From contig NW_003314268.1 in NCBI RefSeq assembly GCF_000143415.4, forward strand, positions 1,596,672 to 1,660,671: 64,000 bases of DNA, written 5' to 3'. A program made the translations under genes and the position numbers. Shown piece by piece: positions 24,073 to 31,363 of the stretch (positions are counted from its first letter, which is position 1; each line of letters opens with the position of its first letter). The notes under the pieces are model-generated. The model was not told the DNA's origin and made no database searches. It saw only the letters and a list, made by a program, of their open reading frames with translations. This DNA comes from Selaginella moellendorffii. Taxonomy: Eukaryota; Plantae; Lycopodiophyta.

Positions 24073-25095
24073 ATGATCCACGAGGAAGCGACGAAGCTCG
24101 AGAAAGACACAATCAAGCTCGAGAAGGAGGCCAAAGACAAGGAGACGAAGCTTGCGAGCATCCGCGCCGCATTGGCGATGGAGCACCGAGTGCGAGAGGA
24201 TATCAGGTAGTGTCCGGGACTTCCTTGGGCTTACCTTTGATTTGGGGTTCCCCAAATCTTTCGCAGCAAAGAAGCTAAAAGCAAGGGCTCTTGGTGGCAT
24301 TCCCCACAGGTATTTTTTCATCACTATAGAACACTTCGTGATCGATTGAGCGGTCTTTTTTCTTTTTTCTTTTTTTCCAGAGAAGCAAATGCAGTGATTT
24401 GCTATCAAGATCAAGGTCGAGCACGAAACCATTACACGAGCTCAAGACGATTCGCAGTGGTTCTTCCTGCTCGTTAAGTGCGTCAGAGACCTTACTTCCA
24501 CTTTGCATTTACATCTCAAATCTTTGTAGCTTTCCAGAGACGACTACCACCGAGAACGAGCTCATGAGCCGGATCTGCCAGGACATGACCATCGACCAAG
24601 ACTATGATCTCGACAGCACCCGATATAACTCGTCGCTCAAGAGAGCATCCAACATGCTACTGAGCTCTTTTGGCAGCGATACAAGTTTCGAAGGAACCAA
24701 GCTAAGCCAGTCATCATCCTCGGCTAGAGGAACTCCAGGCTAGTGCCTTTTTCTGTAGATCGTTTCCACTCGATCATTCGGTCTGGTCTCACACCTTGTT
24801 TTTTCAGTCGACCTGAGCCCGAGAAGGGATCGGTTCCCGGTGGAGGAGCAGCTAAGCCAGTCGAGCTCGATGCTTACGGACGATCCCCGCTGCATGGGGA
24901 TTCAGACAGACCATTTCTGTCCACCGTCAGTCATGGAAAACACTGCGGCTCCTCTTCCCCCGAAGCGTGAAAAGACTTACTTCGAGCACGTAAGTTTCCT
25001 CTCCTCTTTTGGTTTTAAGTTTGTGTTTGTTTTGGCAGCTCGTTGCGCAAGCTCACATGATTCCCAAGAGATCCCTGTACGAAACAAACATCTGA
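24073..25095 (+). CDS. Hypothetical multi-exon protein with an N-terminal coiled coil
   Basis: Exon/intron alternation gives MIHEEATKLEKDTIKLEKEAKDKETKLASIR...LPPKREKTYFEH|LVAQAHMIPKRSLYETNI*. Start uncertain (possible upstream exon at 23974) and some splice sites uncertain. No family recognised. Confidence 0.45.
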
Positions 25096-25566
25096 TAATC
25101 AGAAAACGTCAACAACAGTTTTGTACCTACCTGGAAGATTTCGATCCTGGCCAATCAAAGCCGCCTTTTAAGTGTAGCTTGTACCGCTCGATGTAGCTGA
25201 CAGCCAAGCTCGGTGTCAAGTTCTTGAGAAGTATGTTCACCATCTACTTAGTTTTTAGGAAAGATATTGTCGTTCGAGCTCGATAACTGGTTAAATGCTT
25301 GCAAGATCTTGTAACGAAGCAAATGTTTCCTCTAAGAGAAGAACTCTGCGATTGTAGTACAGCTGCCAGCTTATCGAAAAACTTGGAACTCGAAATTACT
25401 TGCCTGTTTGATCGTCGCGCCTGCCAATGCCGATGGAATGACCTGTCAGCGGCTTTAAATGCTGTAAACGCGGCGATTTGCTCCTCACCGCGTGCAAATT
25501 AAACTCGCCACCGTTTTAACTTGGATGCACAGCTTGTCTGAAGAATCATCCTTTCAGGGCCCAGTT

Positions 25567-25940
25567 ATGTCGTCCCCAACTGTAGCAGCACAGAGAAACC
25601 TCCTCGTTGCGACACTTGTGCTTCTTCTCGTAGCGATTTCTAGCGGGAACACCAGCAGCAAATCACCTGTGGTATGTATGAAACTTTTCCAGCTTACCTG
25701 AGATGTTTGAAGGTTTTCCAGAGCAAAGGCGGGATGTTTCGCCAAGACTATCGCGATGTGAATCCAATCCCTCGGCCATGGCTACCACTGAGACCAGGAC
25801 CAATCGTCTTCATAAGGCCCGTTCCTCGCTCTCCTCCACCTCCAAAAAGTTCACTCTCGCTTCCGCCGGCACCGAGTCCTCTCCCGGGACCACAGGGACG
25901 TCGGAGGACCAAAAAGACGTTGCCAGGCTCACGAACTTGA
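25567..25940 (+). CDS. TWS1/CIF-like tyrosine-sulfated peptide precursor (intron 25672-25721)
   Basis: Signal peptide exon, in-frame 50-nt GT-AG intron, then DYRDVNPIPRPWLPLRPGPI followed by a Pro-rich tail. Confidence 0.65.
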
Positions 25941-25945
25941 CGTCT

Positions 25946-27853
25946 TCACCAGTCAAGTGTATCAGAGTTTCCAGTTGTAAAGCCAACGAGTGATTGCAGA
26001 GCCACCCTCGCTCCTGACTTGTAAATGCCGTCCAATGGATTCTTTGGAAATTCAAAGTCGAAGTTTTCTTCTTCGGGCTTGAAAGATACCGAGTCATGCT
26101 GGGACACCTGAAAGAGCTTGCCTGGACAGTCGTCTTCCAGCTTGAAACATAAGGAGTCCACCTCAAAGAGCTTGCCTGGACTGTCGTATCCTTGGTTGTA
26201 TCCGTCTTCTTCTTCGTCTTGGATCTCCGAGATATCAAACCGTCCAGCCGATCTGAGTTCTTCTTGGATCTCCGAGATATCAAACTGTCCAGCCGATCTG
26301 AGTTCTTCGCAGTCTGAATGCCCCTTGTCTTCAAGCTGTGAATCGCTTCCATCTATCGAATGCAGTCCCAATGTATCCTTCGTAACTTCAAAGCTCAATT
26401 TTTCTTCTTCCGGCTCGGAATATAGCGACGAGAGTAAGTCCTGTTGCGGCACCTCGAACAGCTGGCCTGGACTGTCGAGCTTGTCTGTCTCGATACTCTG
26501 GCTTGAGAGATTTACATTTGGGAACCGTCCAGCACTCCATGCCGATCTTGTCATCTCCTTGACATTCCAGGTTTTCAGTGCTTCGTAGTCTGAATCTCCG
26601 TCGTCGTCTTTGAGCTGTGAATGACTCTCAACATGCCCATCCCAATCCGCACTATTGTCATCCGAAAGCCCGGAACTCCACGCTAATTCCGTCATCTCCT
26701 TGATATTCCAGTTCTTCAAGGCTTCGAAGTGAGAATCCTCTTCGTCTTCAAGCAGTAAGGGACTTCCAGGTTGAAGTAGTTTATGGCCTTTTTCCTCGCA
26801 CGAGATGGCCGGATTAACAACGTCCAGCCTCCTGAGCAGTGTTTCGACTCTGGGAGGCCTGGAAAATAAATTAGCTACCAACGTGAGCAAAATCAACCCA
26901 ATGTAACCTTACCCCTTAGATTTGGAACTCCGAGATGATAGTTCTTGGAGATGATGTTGGATTCGCGTGAATATGTTCTTATAGTTGCCCGTGTAGATTG
27001 CCCCTGTGCATAGTAGTATTTAGAACAAGAGAAAAGCTAAAATCTCCAAGAACTTTACCATCATCGCTTTTACTTCCCCTTAACATTCCATCTGTCGAGG
27101 AAGGAAAAGGTCAAAACATTAAGTACAATGCTGAAACTTATTACCATTGTGTCTTAGCGTATGAGTTGGAGAACTTAAATCTCGATTTTCTTTGGAACTT
27201 TTAAAGTAGATTTCACCTTAAAACAGACTCAGGGTCAATGAGATTTCTAGATCACACCTTAAAAATCTTACCATCATCCTTGTGACTTCCAGTATTTTCT
27301 GGACACCATGAAAAAATTACAATCCTGAATAATCAGCAATCTTACCTTCGTAGCTTCCCTTGTAGCTCAAATCTGGGAAAACGAAGTGAGAGCTAGAATT
27401 ATAAAACAATGCTATAAGAAACTACCATCATTTTTGTCGCTTCCCGAGTCGATTGTTCCTGGACAAAAAAGGATACCGAGAATGACGCAGGAACAATAGT
27501 AAAAGCTTACGATTGTCTCGCTCTGGGGTGTGTACTTCTGGCAGACACTGCTGGAACCGTTTGAAGAAACTAAACTCGGACGTCCTCGGCCTGTCGAAGA
27601 AGCTCGAATTCTGGAAACCAGTCCTTCTCAATTGCCGCGTCTTGTTCCTGAATGCTAACCACGTAAGAACGAGCCAAGCCAGACCATAATCTCACTTCAA
27701 GCGCTTCTTCTCGCGCGCGCGACGCGATCGGAACCCCTGAATACCAAAATCAAGGAAGGATCTGAGACCTGCAATGCCAGATGCGCCTACATTTTGCGAC
27801 GCGGAGGAGGAAGACGATGCCGATGACGCCGTGCCAAGGCTCCGGATTCCCAT
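25946..27853 (-). CDS. Hypothetical multi-exon acidic, repeat-rich protein
   Basis: ATG at 27853 (MGIRSLGTASSASS...), several short exons and a final ORF of about 300 aa with internal repeats (ALKxWNxKEMT; DSPGxLFEV; EELRSAGxFDISEIQ x2). Confidence 0.55.
26215..26310. repeat. 45-nt coding tandem duplication (EELRSAG[Q/R]FDISEIQ x2)
   Basis: ggatctccgagatatcaaacYgtccagccgatctgagttcttc occurs twice. Confidence 0.85.
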
Positions 27854-29398: not shown

Positions 29399-31363
29399 AT
29401 GAGAAATCCCGGTATTGTTAGAAAGCTGGTTCTTCTGGCGTGGTTTCAATGGGGGGTAGCAACAGCAGCAGCAATTTGCGAGAGAACGAGCTGCGGTAAT
29501 GTCACTGTTCAATACCCCTTTGGTCTCGGATATGGCTGTGGAAGTCCCGGCTTTGGGCTAAGCTGCACGGACTCTGTCTTGTACTTCAACAGTTCGATTG
29601 TGGGAAGCATCGACTACAATGGCCGAAGTTTGGTTTTGAGCTCCGGTGAAGGCTGCCCCTTGAGGAATCTTCCAACGGAGATTCAGATCTGTAGCAGAAA
29701 CCAAAGAAATGACGGGAATGGACAGCAAGTATGTTTGCTTGGTTACAGTAGCTGCTGCTTGGAAAGAAACTCGTCATTCGACGGAGAAGGATGTATGGCT
29801 TACAGGGCGGCTGGAGGCTCGTCTTCAACAGTTAGTGCTTCTCTGGGTGATTTTTCGCTCAGGTGGCCTCCGGAACTACAGACTAGGTGCGACCCTTGCT
29901 ATCGCGTTGGGAATGGACAGTGCGGCTACAATTCAACAAGTGATTTCGTCTGCTTTTGTGAGACGTCAAACACGACTGCAACTTGCAGTGTAACTCGTAA
30001 GTAATTATCATTTTCTTCCTTCTTCGCAGCTCACATTTGGACGTATCTCTGCAGAAGGCCAAACCAATGCTCCAATAATCATATCAGGTATATCAGGTAG
30101 TTTGATTTCTAAGATGGTTATTTCATGAGAGTGGCGACTTACATTCGATTGGCATGAACAGGCTCTGTCGCCATCGCGGTGATTGTCGTGGTTCTCGTGT
30201 TCGGAGTGAGCCTCTCAATATACTGGAAGTGGAAAAAGAATGGCCGCGAGAGCACGCCAGAGCCGATTTTCTCACTCGACGATCCCAGCCGAGATGTCGA
30301 AAACCTCCGCCAGATACTCTCCACGCGCAGGGGCGACCCCGCAAAGCTCTACACCTTATCCGAGATCGACAAGGCCACAAACGGTTTCGACAAGGAACAC
30401 AAGATTGGCAGCGGTGGCTTTGGCACTGTTTACAAAGGACTCTTCGACGACGGCTCGGTTCTAGCAATCAAGAGAGCAAACCACACATCAAAGCAAAGCT
30501 CGCGGCACTTTTACAACGAGGTGGCCATCCTTTCACAGGTAAACCACCGCAACTTACTCAGGCTCATGGGTTGCTGCGTCGACTCGGACGTTCCCATACT
30601 CGTGTACGAGTACATTCCAAACGGGAATCTCTTCGAACATCTCCACAAGAGGCCGGGGGTTTTAAGCTGGAGCAACAGACTGACGATCGCAATAGAGACG
30701 GCCGAGGCACTTGCTTACTTGCACTCGGCTGCGTATCCACCGATCTATCACAGGGACGTAAAGTCGGCCAACATTCTCCTCGACAACGCCTTCACGACGA
30801 AGGTGGCGGACTTTGGCCTCTCCCGGCTGGTTCCCGTGGACGTGACTCACGTCTCGACCATGGTACAAGGAACTCCCGGCTACGTCGACCCGGAGTATCA
30901 CCAGACGTATCAGCTCACGGACAAGAGCGACGTCTACAGCTTTGGGGTGGTGCTGCTGGAGATGGTCACGGGACGCAAGCCAGTGGACTTCGCCAGAGCT
31001 TCCAAGGACGTGAACCTCAGCGCCTACTCGGTGCCTTTGATCCGGAAGGGGCTGATCGAGGAGATCGTGGACCCGAAGCTGGAAGTGAGAGTTTCTGGCA
31101 ACGCGGCCGACTTGGAGCTCCTGGAATCCATCCGAGCAGTGGCCAACGTCGCGATGGCGTGCCTGGCGTTTACGAGAGACGAGCGGCCGACGATGAAGAG
31201 AGTGTTGGAGGAGCTTGTGGCGATCCGGGGGTCGGATGGATTGATTAGGACGGAGTGGCTGGAAGGCGAGGTGATTCTCACCGAGAGTTTCCATCCCAGC
31301 GAGGGTGTCTCGTATAACAGCGGTCGGTCGCGAGATCATTCAGCGGAGATAACGGCCAGGTAA
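29399..31363 (+). CDS. Wall-associated kinase-like receptor kinase (GUB_WAK-type ectodomain, TM, RD kinase). Exons approx. 29399-29996, 30055-30090, 30162-31363
   Basis: CERTSCGNVTVQYPFGLGYGCG, C-x2-C...GQCG...FVCFC, a TM helix, GSGGFGTVYKG, IYHRDVKSANILLD and QGTPGYVDPEY. Confidence 0.92.

Follow-up and report, generated by a model that had tools for sequence, protein, structure and literature searches.

A 64,000-nucleotide stretch of the Selaginella moellendorffii genome (the window) contains a real, transcribed two-exon nuclear gene for a putative secreted proline-rich protein with one Asp-Tyr (DY) motif. Judged by sequence comparison, the product resembles TWS1 (TWISTED SEED1, At5g01075), a sulfated ligand of GSO1/GSO2 in the embryo cuticle surveillance of Arabidopsis, in its layout and in part of its sequence, as a candidate member of the same family. 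The reading that we favor, at a rough probability of 0.45, is that a secreted pre-pro-peptide would give rise to a DY-led, TWS1-like extracellular ligand. A GSO ortholog would be the most likely receptor, since TWS1 is the closest known ligand by design and by sequence, and the status of the product as a GSO ligand is plausible. The organism is a lycophyte, in agreement with the seedless vascular plant that a first, sequence-only reading had proposed as the source. The distinctive points of the gene are a fast-evolving core, the missing terminal His/Asn, and an antisense overlap with its neighbor (Table 1).

Table 1. Features of the peptide gene and of the transcripts that overlap it (positions in the window).
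Feature	Position	Strand	Remarks
Upstream in-frame ATG and 14-codon extension	25525..25566	+	Used in the NCBI 121-residue model; P0001 starts MHSLSEESSFQGPV
Exon 1	25567..25671	+	Start codon and 35 codons, MSSPTVAAQRNLLVATLVLLLVAISSGNTSSKSPV; signal-peptide-like N terminus
Intron	25672..25721	+	50 nt, GT (25672-73)..AG (25720-21), phase 0
Exon 2	25722..25940	+	72 codons and stop, phase 0; reads SKGGMFRQDYRDVNPIPRPWLPLRPGPIVFIRPVPRSPPPPK...SRT and stop
Putative peptide core DYRDVNPIPRPWLPLRPGPIVF	25746..25811	+	Best alignment to TWS1
Asp-Tyr putative sulfation motif	25746-25751	+	Residues 44-45; single DY, invariant in both paralogs
SPPPP (extensin-type Ser-Pro4)	25830..25844	+	Columns P73-P76 invariant in the two-paralog alignment A1
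Antisense intron 1	25640..25697	-	Joint 25639/25698, CT..AC (GT..AG on the minus strand); X1 (depth 81), X5, X6
Antisense intron 2	25346..25403	-	Joint 25345/25404, CT..GC (GC..AG on the minus strand); X1, X6
Convergent neighbor gene	25946..27688	-	About 407 residues, acidic, repeat-rich; upper coordinate approximate, mapped from L002

Direct reading of the sequence and its translation gave a predicted product of 107 residues, from the ATG at 25567 to the stop at 25940, with the two exons joined in frame. The full translation of exon 2 is SKGGMFRQDYRDVNPIPRPWLPLRPGPIVFIRPVPRSPPPPKSSLSLPPAPSPLPGPQGRRRTKKTLPGSRT, then the stop, and its layout comprises a short pro-segment (SKGGMFRQ), the DY-led core, the SPPPP motif, and a basic Pro/Ser-rich tail. 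Since the mechanical list of open reading frames (ORFs) holds two halves only (25492-25701 and 25674-25940), the gene is absent as a whole from the ORF track. The sequence-only reading had called it hidden, which is true relative to this track, but NCBI already predicts the spliced product, though it is misnamed. A word-indexed protein search with exon 2 found, among 3 candidates, two S. moellendorffii proteins alone, both from NCBI. The first (P0001) has 121 residues, is 97% identical to exon 2, and is labeled "formin-like protein 2"; the second (P0002), the paralog, has 107 residues, is 72% identical to exon 2, and is labeled "splicing factor 3B subunit 4-like." The two names arose as artefacts of the proline-rich sequence, and the gene model, with the very splice proposed in the sequence-only reading, is already public under these wrong names.

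The longer of the two public models starts at an upstream in-frame ATG, which has a pyrimidine at position -3, and the model of the paralog begins at the second ATG. When compared with the paralog, the 14-codon extension carries, by a manual count on the alignment, 4 nonsynonymous changes and 1 synonymous change and looks neutral, unlike exon 1. Because of this pattern of changes in the extension, the ATG at 25567 is favored as the start. The extension would probably be 5′ untranslated sequence, and the start of the 121-residue model is probably wrong.

Two further contigs carry related sequence. GL377618.1 (L002) matches the window at 97% identity across 12.4 kb and represents this locus in the other haplotype or assembly. 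GL377571.1 (L001) shares about 1.4 kb with the window (25384-26821 versus 5829-7133 of L001) and is a small segmental duplicate made of the peptide gene and part of the repeat-rich last exon of its neighbor. Background identity in this duplicate is about 91 to 94%, with gaps of 50 to 68 nt inside repeats.

Twenty public runs contain the stretch, and four of them, from four studies (X1, X5, X6, and X7), were compared over positions 24300 to 27300. Their RNA nature is a guess of the tool; since their contigs are spliced at many canonical sites, we took them as transcript assemblies. The 50-nt GT..AG skip at 25671/25722 was present in contigs of X5, X6, and X7, i.e., in three independent studies, so that the in-frame splice claimed from the sequence alone is borne out by transcripts. 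One 330-nt contig of X7 joins 46 nt of exon 1 to 25721-26004 with zero mismatches. Transcripts of the paralog are spliced at the same site (X5 record 8; X7 records 19-20), and the presence of contigs of the L001 type in X5 and X7 indicates that both paralogs are expressed. The intron is 92% identical in the paralog, where both splice sites are preserved. Contigs of X5 and X6 also cover position 25689, which is intronic on both strands, and these runs therefore contain unspliced RNA or DNA carry-over.

The surroundings of the gene were also surveyed. On the plus strand, the gene upstream encodes 322 residues in L002, is blank in a Pfam scan, and has a GC..AG intron at 24739-24807 in all four runs; a noncanonical CA..TT joint at 24735/24805, with three ambiguous letters, was resolved as this same intron. 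A wall-associated-kinase-like receptor kinase (GUB_WAK_bind and Pkinase) is encoded about 3.5 kb downstream (about 29400-31360 in the window, 9871-11836 in L002). Other neighbors are an HMG-box gene, a serine carboxypeptidase (Peptidase_S10), TMA7, and an Fcf1/UTP23 gene. No link was seen between the peptide gene and the WAK-like kinase or these other neighbors.

The N terminus encoded by exon 1 has an n-region with one Arg and a 13-residue hydrophobic core (LLVATLVLLLVAI), next to which stand the small residues SSG; hydropathy peaks at 3.3 over residues 12 to 22. By the -3/-1 rule, a putative cleavage site likely lies near SSG27. We compared the window with its single paralog exon by exon (Nei-Gojobori; two sequences, without outgroup). 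Exon 1 showed 5 synonymous and 2 nonsynonymous changes (dN/dS = 0.13; binomial P of about 0.02), a pattern that indicates purifying selection on the signal-peptide exon. This selection and the hydrophobic core agree with the signal-peptide-like exon of the earlier proposal. Despite 33 exonic substitutions, the paralog retains the frame, start, stop, and two splice sites. The coding region and intron show 0 indels and no premature stop, and the flanks are gapped. The frame was read as protein because exon 1 is constrained and the coding region is free of indels while its flanks are not. The ESM Atlas model of the product has a pTM of 0.20, which suggests disorder.

If the product is a TWS1-like ligand, its maturation could proceed as follows. 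The signal peptide would direct the precursor into the secretory pathway and be cleaved near SSG27. Tyr45 would be sulfated by the TPST of the plant, and the prolines of the core and of SPPPP would be hydroxylated, the latter motif being a likely hydroxylation/arabinosylation site. Proteases of the subtilase type would free a DY-led peptide of about 20 to 24 residues, which would act as the extracellular ligand of a leucine-rich repeat (LRR) receptor kinase and be perceived by the GSO ortholog. Both a GSO-clade receptor and a TPST are reported for S. moellendorffii (PMC8462819). TWS1 and CLEL6 are known to be cleaved N-terminally in an Asp-dependent manner (PMC13082318).

Twelve DY peptides, as printed in PMC11534595 and PMC8462819, were aligned locally to both paralogs (BLOSUM62), and the scores were set against those of shuffles that kept the DY and the composition. 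TWS1, compared as the 23-residue peptide printed in PMC11534595 and not at full length, was the best of the twelve in the comparison of either paralog. Its alignment was above chance (P of about 0.01 for the window and 0.003 for the paralog), values that are borderline after correction for twelve peptides; within this margin, the DY-led, proline-rich, TWS1-like core that had been read from the sequence is upheld. TWS1 and both paralogs conform to one frame, DY-x3/4-V[DN]PxP-x6-[KR]PG; the spacer from DY to V[DN]P is shorter by one residue in the gene than in TWS1. The paralog aligns to TWS1 over VDPxP...[KR]PG even without the DY. Six residues beyond [KR]PG, both paralogs carry an Arg. The pattern DY-x4-PxP-[RK] is also present in both (DYRDVNPIP and DYPDVDPSP). 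Given the composition of exon 2, this pattern exceeds chance: it arose in 1.8% of exon 2 shuffles in which the DY was fixed and, with a downstream PGP[IV], in 0.1%, both motifs having been picked after the sequence had been seen.

The likeness to TWS1 extends to the architecture of the precursor. Both precursors are small (81 residues in TWS1 and 107 here) and carry a signal peptide. Each has its DY-led peptide in a central position, with an extension on the C-terminal side; PGPI is also shared, in the window copy. Unlike TWS1, the gene has no His at the end of its core and no counterpart of the ALE1/SBT1.8 site PGPIEH/G (the slash marks the cut). The setting must differ as well, since Selaginella has neither seed nor endosperm.

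The likeness to the CIF peptides claimed along with that to TWS1 was not recovered: CIF1-4 aligned at chance level to both paralogs (P from 0.29 to 0.85). The gene shares with CIF1-4 the DY-x4-PxP spacing and with CIF1-3 the [RK] that comes next, but the C-terminal Asn/His of the CIFs is missing. Moreover, the CIF1/2 peptides, unlike that of the gene, are placed at the very C terminus of their precursors. C-terminal extensions that need cleavage are known for CIF3, CIF4, and TWS1 (PMC13082318). Okuda et al. (2020) define the CIFs by an N-terminal DY, two central prolines, and, as a third feature, a C-terminal His/Asn (PMC7007523). Both paralogs have the two central prolines (PxP) after the DY, and neither has a His/Asn at about 21 to 23 residues after it. 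Exon 2 has no His, and its only Asn lies four residues after the DY; the paralog adds one as its final residue (N107). The precursors of the CIF/TWS1 group in Arabidopsis have about 76 to 102 residues and an N-terminal secretion signal, and the product, with 107 residues and a hydrophobic N terminus, is of the same kind in these respects. The conserved peptide domain of this group has no equivalent here, as the core is the part that diverges most between the two paralogs. Given the absence of the third CIF feature, we do not count the gene among the proven members of the CIF/TWS1 family.

Relatives of the gene were sought in several databases. An exhaustive profile search with both paralogs (alignment A1) against 1.84 billion protein representatives returned the family itself, in S. 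moellendorffii only, and hence no relative outside this species in which conservation of DY...PGPI, the test set by the earlier reading, could be followed. A further match, P0003, was a spurious repeat protein matched on SWVPVG repeats. Pfam scans of exon 1 and of exon 2 and a sequence search of the PDB were blank, and no usable match was found in the ESM Atlas. TWS1-type proteins have no word of five residues in common with the core. Short peptide families largely escape such database searches, and a kinship with TWS1 may therefore exist despite these results.

In the 27 codons after the DY, we counted 16 nonsynonymous and 2 synonymous changes between the two paralogs (dN = 0.34 and dS = 0.10). 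The C-terminal half of the core (PIVFIRPVPRS in the window and KVSYKRLVPSP in the paralog) has 10 nonsynonymous changes and 0 synonymous ones (dN = 0.60 and dS = 0). The tail of exon 2 has 5 nonsynonymous and 2 synonymous changes (dN/dS of about 1), and exon 2 overall has a dN/dS of about 2. Divergence of the core is 18/81 nt (22%) versus 8.6% in the upstream region, intron, and 3′ flank (Fisher test; P = 0.0012). The core is thus the most diverged part between the paralogs; after the DY, its rate is about 3.5-fold that of neutral DNA, and its dN of 0.34 stands against about 0.09. This fits diversifying selection, as a signal short of proof from two sequences without an outgroup. Alternatively, mutations may have clustered in the core, or gene conversion may have spared it. 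PGPI is found in the window copy alone, its equivalent in the paralog being PGKV (RPGKVSYK). The divergent processing site that had been built on PGPI is thereby weakened. The C-terminal half of the core is where the paralogs have diverged fastest, and they may therefore be processed differently or use different receptors.

In peptide-hormone precursors, the ligand domain is usually not the fastest-evolving part, which is the opposite of what the core shows. It is quite possible that the gene encodes a lineage-specific, fast-evolving, secreted hydroxyproline-rich protein, either extensin-like through its SPPPP or a peptide of defense or reproduction, which would not be a GSO ligand and whose likeness to TWS1 would be convergence. 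A conserved signal peptide beside a diversifying mature region is typical of proteins under diversifying selection, and conservation, highest in the signal peptide, is next highest in SPPPP and the Pro/Ser tail. The failure to find relatives outside the species, the absent C-terminal His/Asn, and the chance-level alignments of CIF1-4 point in the same direction. Against this explanation, the DY and V[DN]PxP-x6-[KR]PG were kept while neighboring positions changed, the match to TWS1 is above chance, and in size and layout the product matches peptide-hormone precursors. The TWS1-like ligand remains our preferred reading. Its strongest form, in which the products of both genes would be genuine ligands of the TWS1 type for the lycophyte GSO, lacking the C-terminal His/Asn and diversifying fast in their C-terminal half, is rather unlikely.

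The peptide gene faces a convergent gene on the minus strand, which was recognized from an ORF at 25946-26896, a gene call at 6422-8164 of L002, and CT..AC introns at 26857-27270; a Pfam scan of this gene gave no family match. The stop codon of the neighbor lies 5 nt from that of the peptide gene, and the transcripts of the neighbor continue, spliced, across the peptide gene, which consequently lies antisense within the spliced 3′ region of the neighbor. The two form a natural sense/antisense pair. In run X1, the antisense form was the only one seen at the peptide locus. The spliced minus-strand transcript crosses the whole peptide locus and is the dominant form in X1, and this, with the dN/dS of the exon 2 tail and of exon 2 overall, would suit a plus-strand RNA that is a noncoding or antisense by-product of the neighbor, with a fortuitous open frame. 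Such an origin is very unlikely in view of the excess of synonymous changes in exon 1, the retention of frame, start, stop, and splice sites through all the substitutions with no indel, and the plus-strand GT..AG splice seen in three studies.

Other families of DY peptides also entered the comparison. PSY1, PSY2, RGF10, and GLV8 aligned at chance level to both paralogs; PSY7 and MpCIF did so for the window, with P values of 0.03 and 0.08, respectively, for the paralog, and PSY5 was marginal (P = 0.05 for the window and 0.015 for the paralog). The PSY peptides are, like the peptide proposed here, proline-rich and start with DYxD, and they are sulfated ligands made from small precursors, but their conserved N..H.P signature is missing from the gene. 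The least probable explanation is a product that is sulfated and acts through PSYR or RGI receptors as a PSY-like or RGF-like member of another DY family: the DYxD opening, the marginal score of PSY5, and the RGF and TPST reported for S. moellendorffii (TPST in PMC8462819) speak for it, whereas the PSY signature DY.[DE]P..N..H.P (PMC11534595), including its invariant His, is absent with only DYxD shared, and the window sequence aligns to PSY1, PSY2, PSY7, RGF10, and GLV8 at a level expected by chance. PSY identity was rejected on this signature and on the lack of His in exon 2, and RGF/GLV/CLEL identity (DY peptides of 13 to 16 residues with a C terminus of the PPIHN type) on the absence of such a C terminus and the chance scores of RGF10 and GLV8.

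Published surveys disagree on whether GSO ligands of the CIF/TWS1 type existed before seed plants (PMC11855783 versus PMC8462819). A BLASTP survey of 2025 found no CIF homologs outside seed plants, and the gymnosperm homologs that it describes group with TWS1 (PMC11855783), a grouping that fits TWS1-type peptides being the older form. Furumizu et al. (2021) list putative CIF/TWS1-related peptides of bryophytes, lycophytes, and ferns that were found by pattern (PMC8462819). In their preprint, S. moellendorffii is one of the species on which the CIF query DYxxxxPxPPLxxPxPF is based. Like the gene described here, the 2021 candidates are small secreted precursors with a DY and prolines, from species that have GSO and TPST, and MpCIF as printed there ends in Phe, without His/Asn, similar in this to our gene (PMC8462819). 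Beyond the papers cited here, we found no literature on SmCIF/MpCIF or on SCHENGEN in Selaginella.

The weight of the present finding is limited, as the gene model is public, the idea has been published in a general form, and family membership would rest on a short, borderline similarity. The gene nevertheless adds to this debate an RNA-supported lycophyte candidate with an expressed paralog and a TWS1-like frame, i.e., a concrete pair of peptides, and it sets right the misleading labels that the two proteins carry in public databases. If the strongest form of the favored reading is true, recognition or processing of the ligand C terminus would differ in lycophytes, and the ligand gene would be embedded antisense in the spliced 3′ region of its neighbor. 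The GSO-TWS1 module of barrier surveillance would then predate the origin of seeds.
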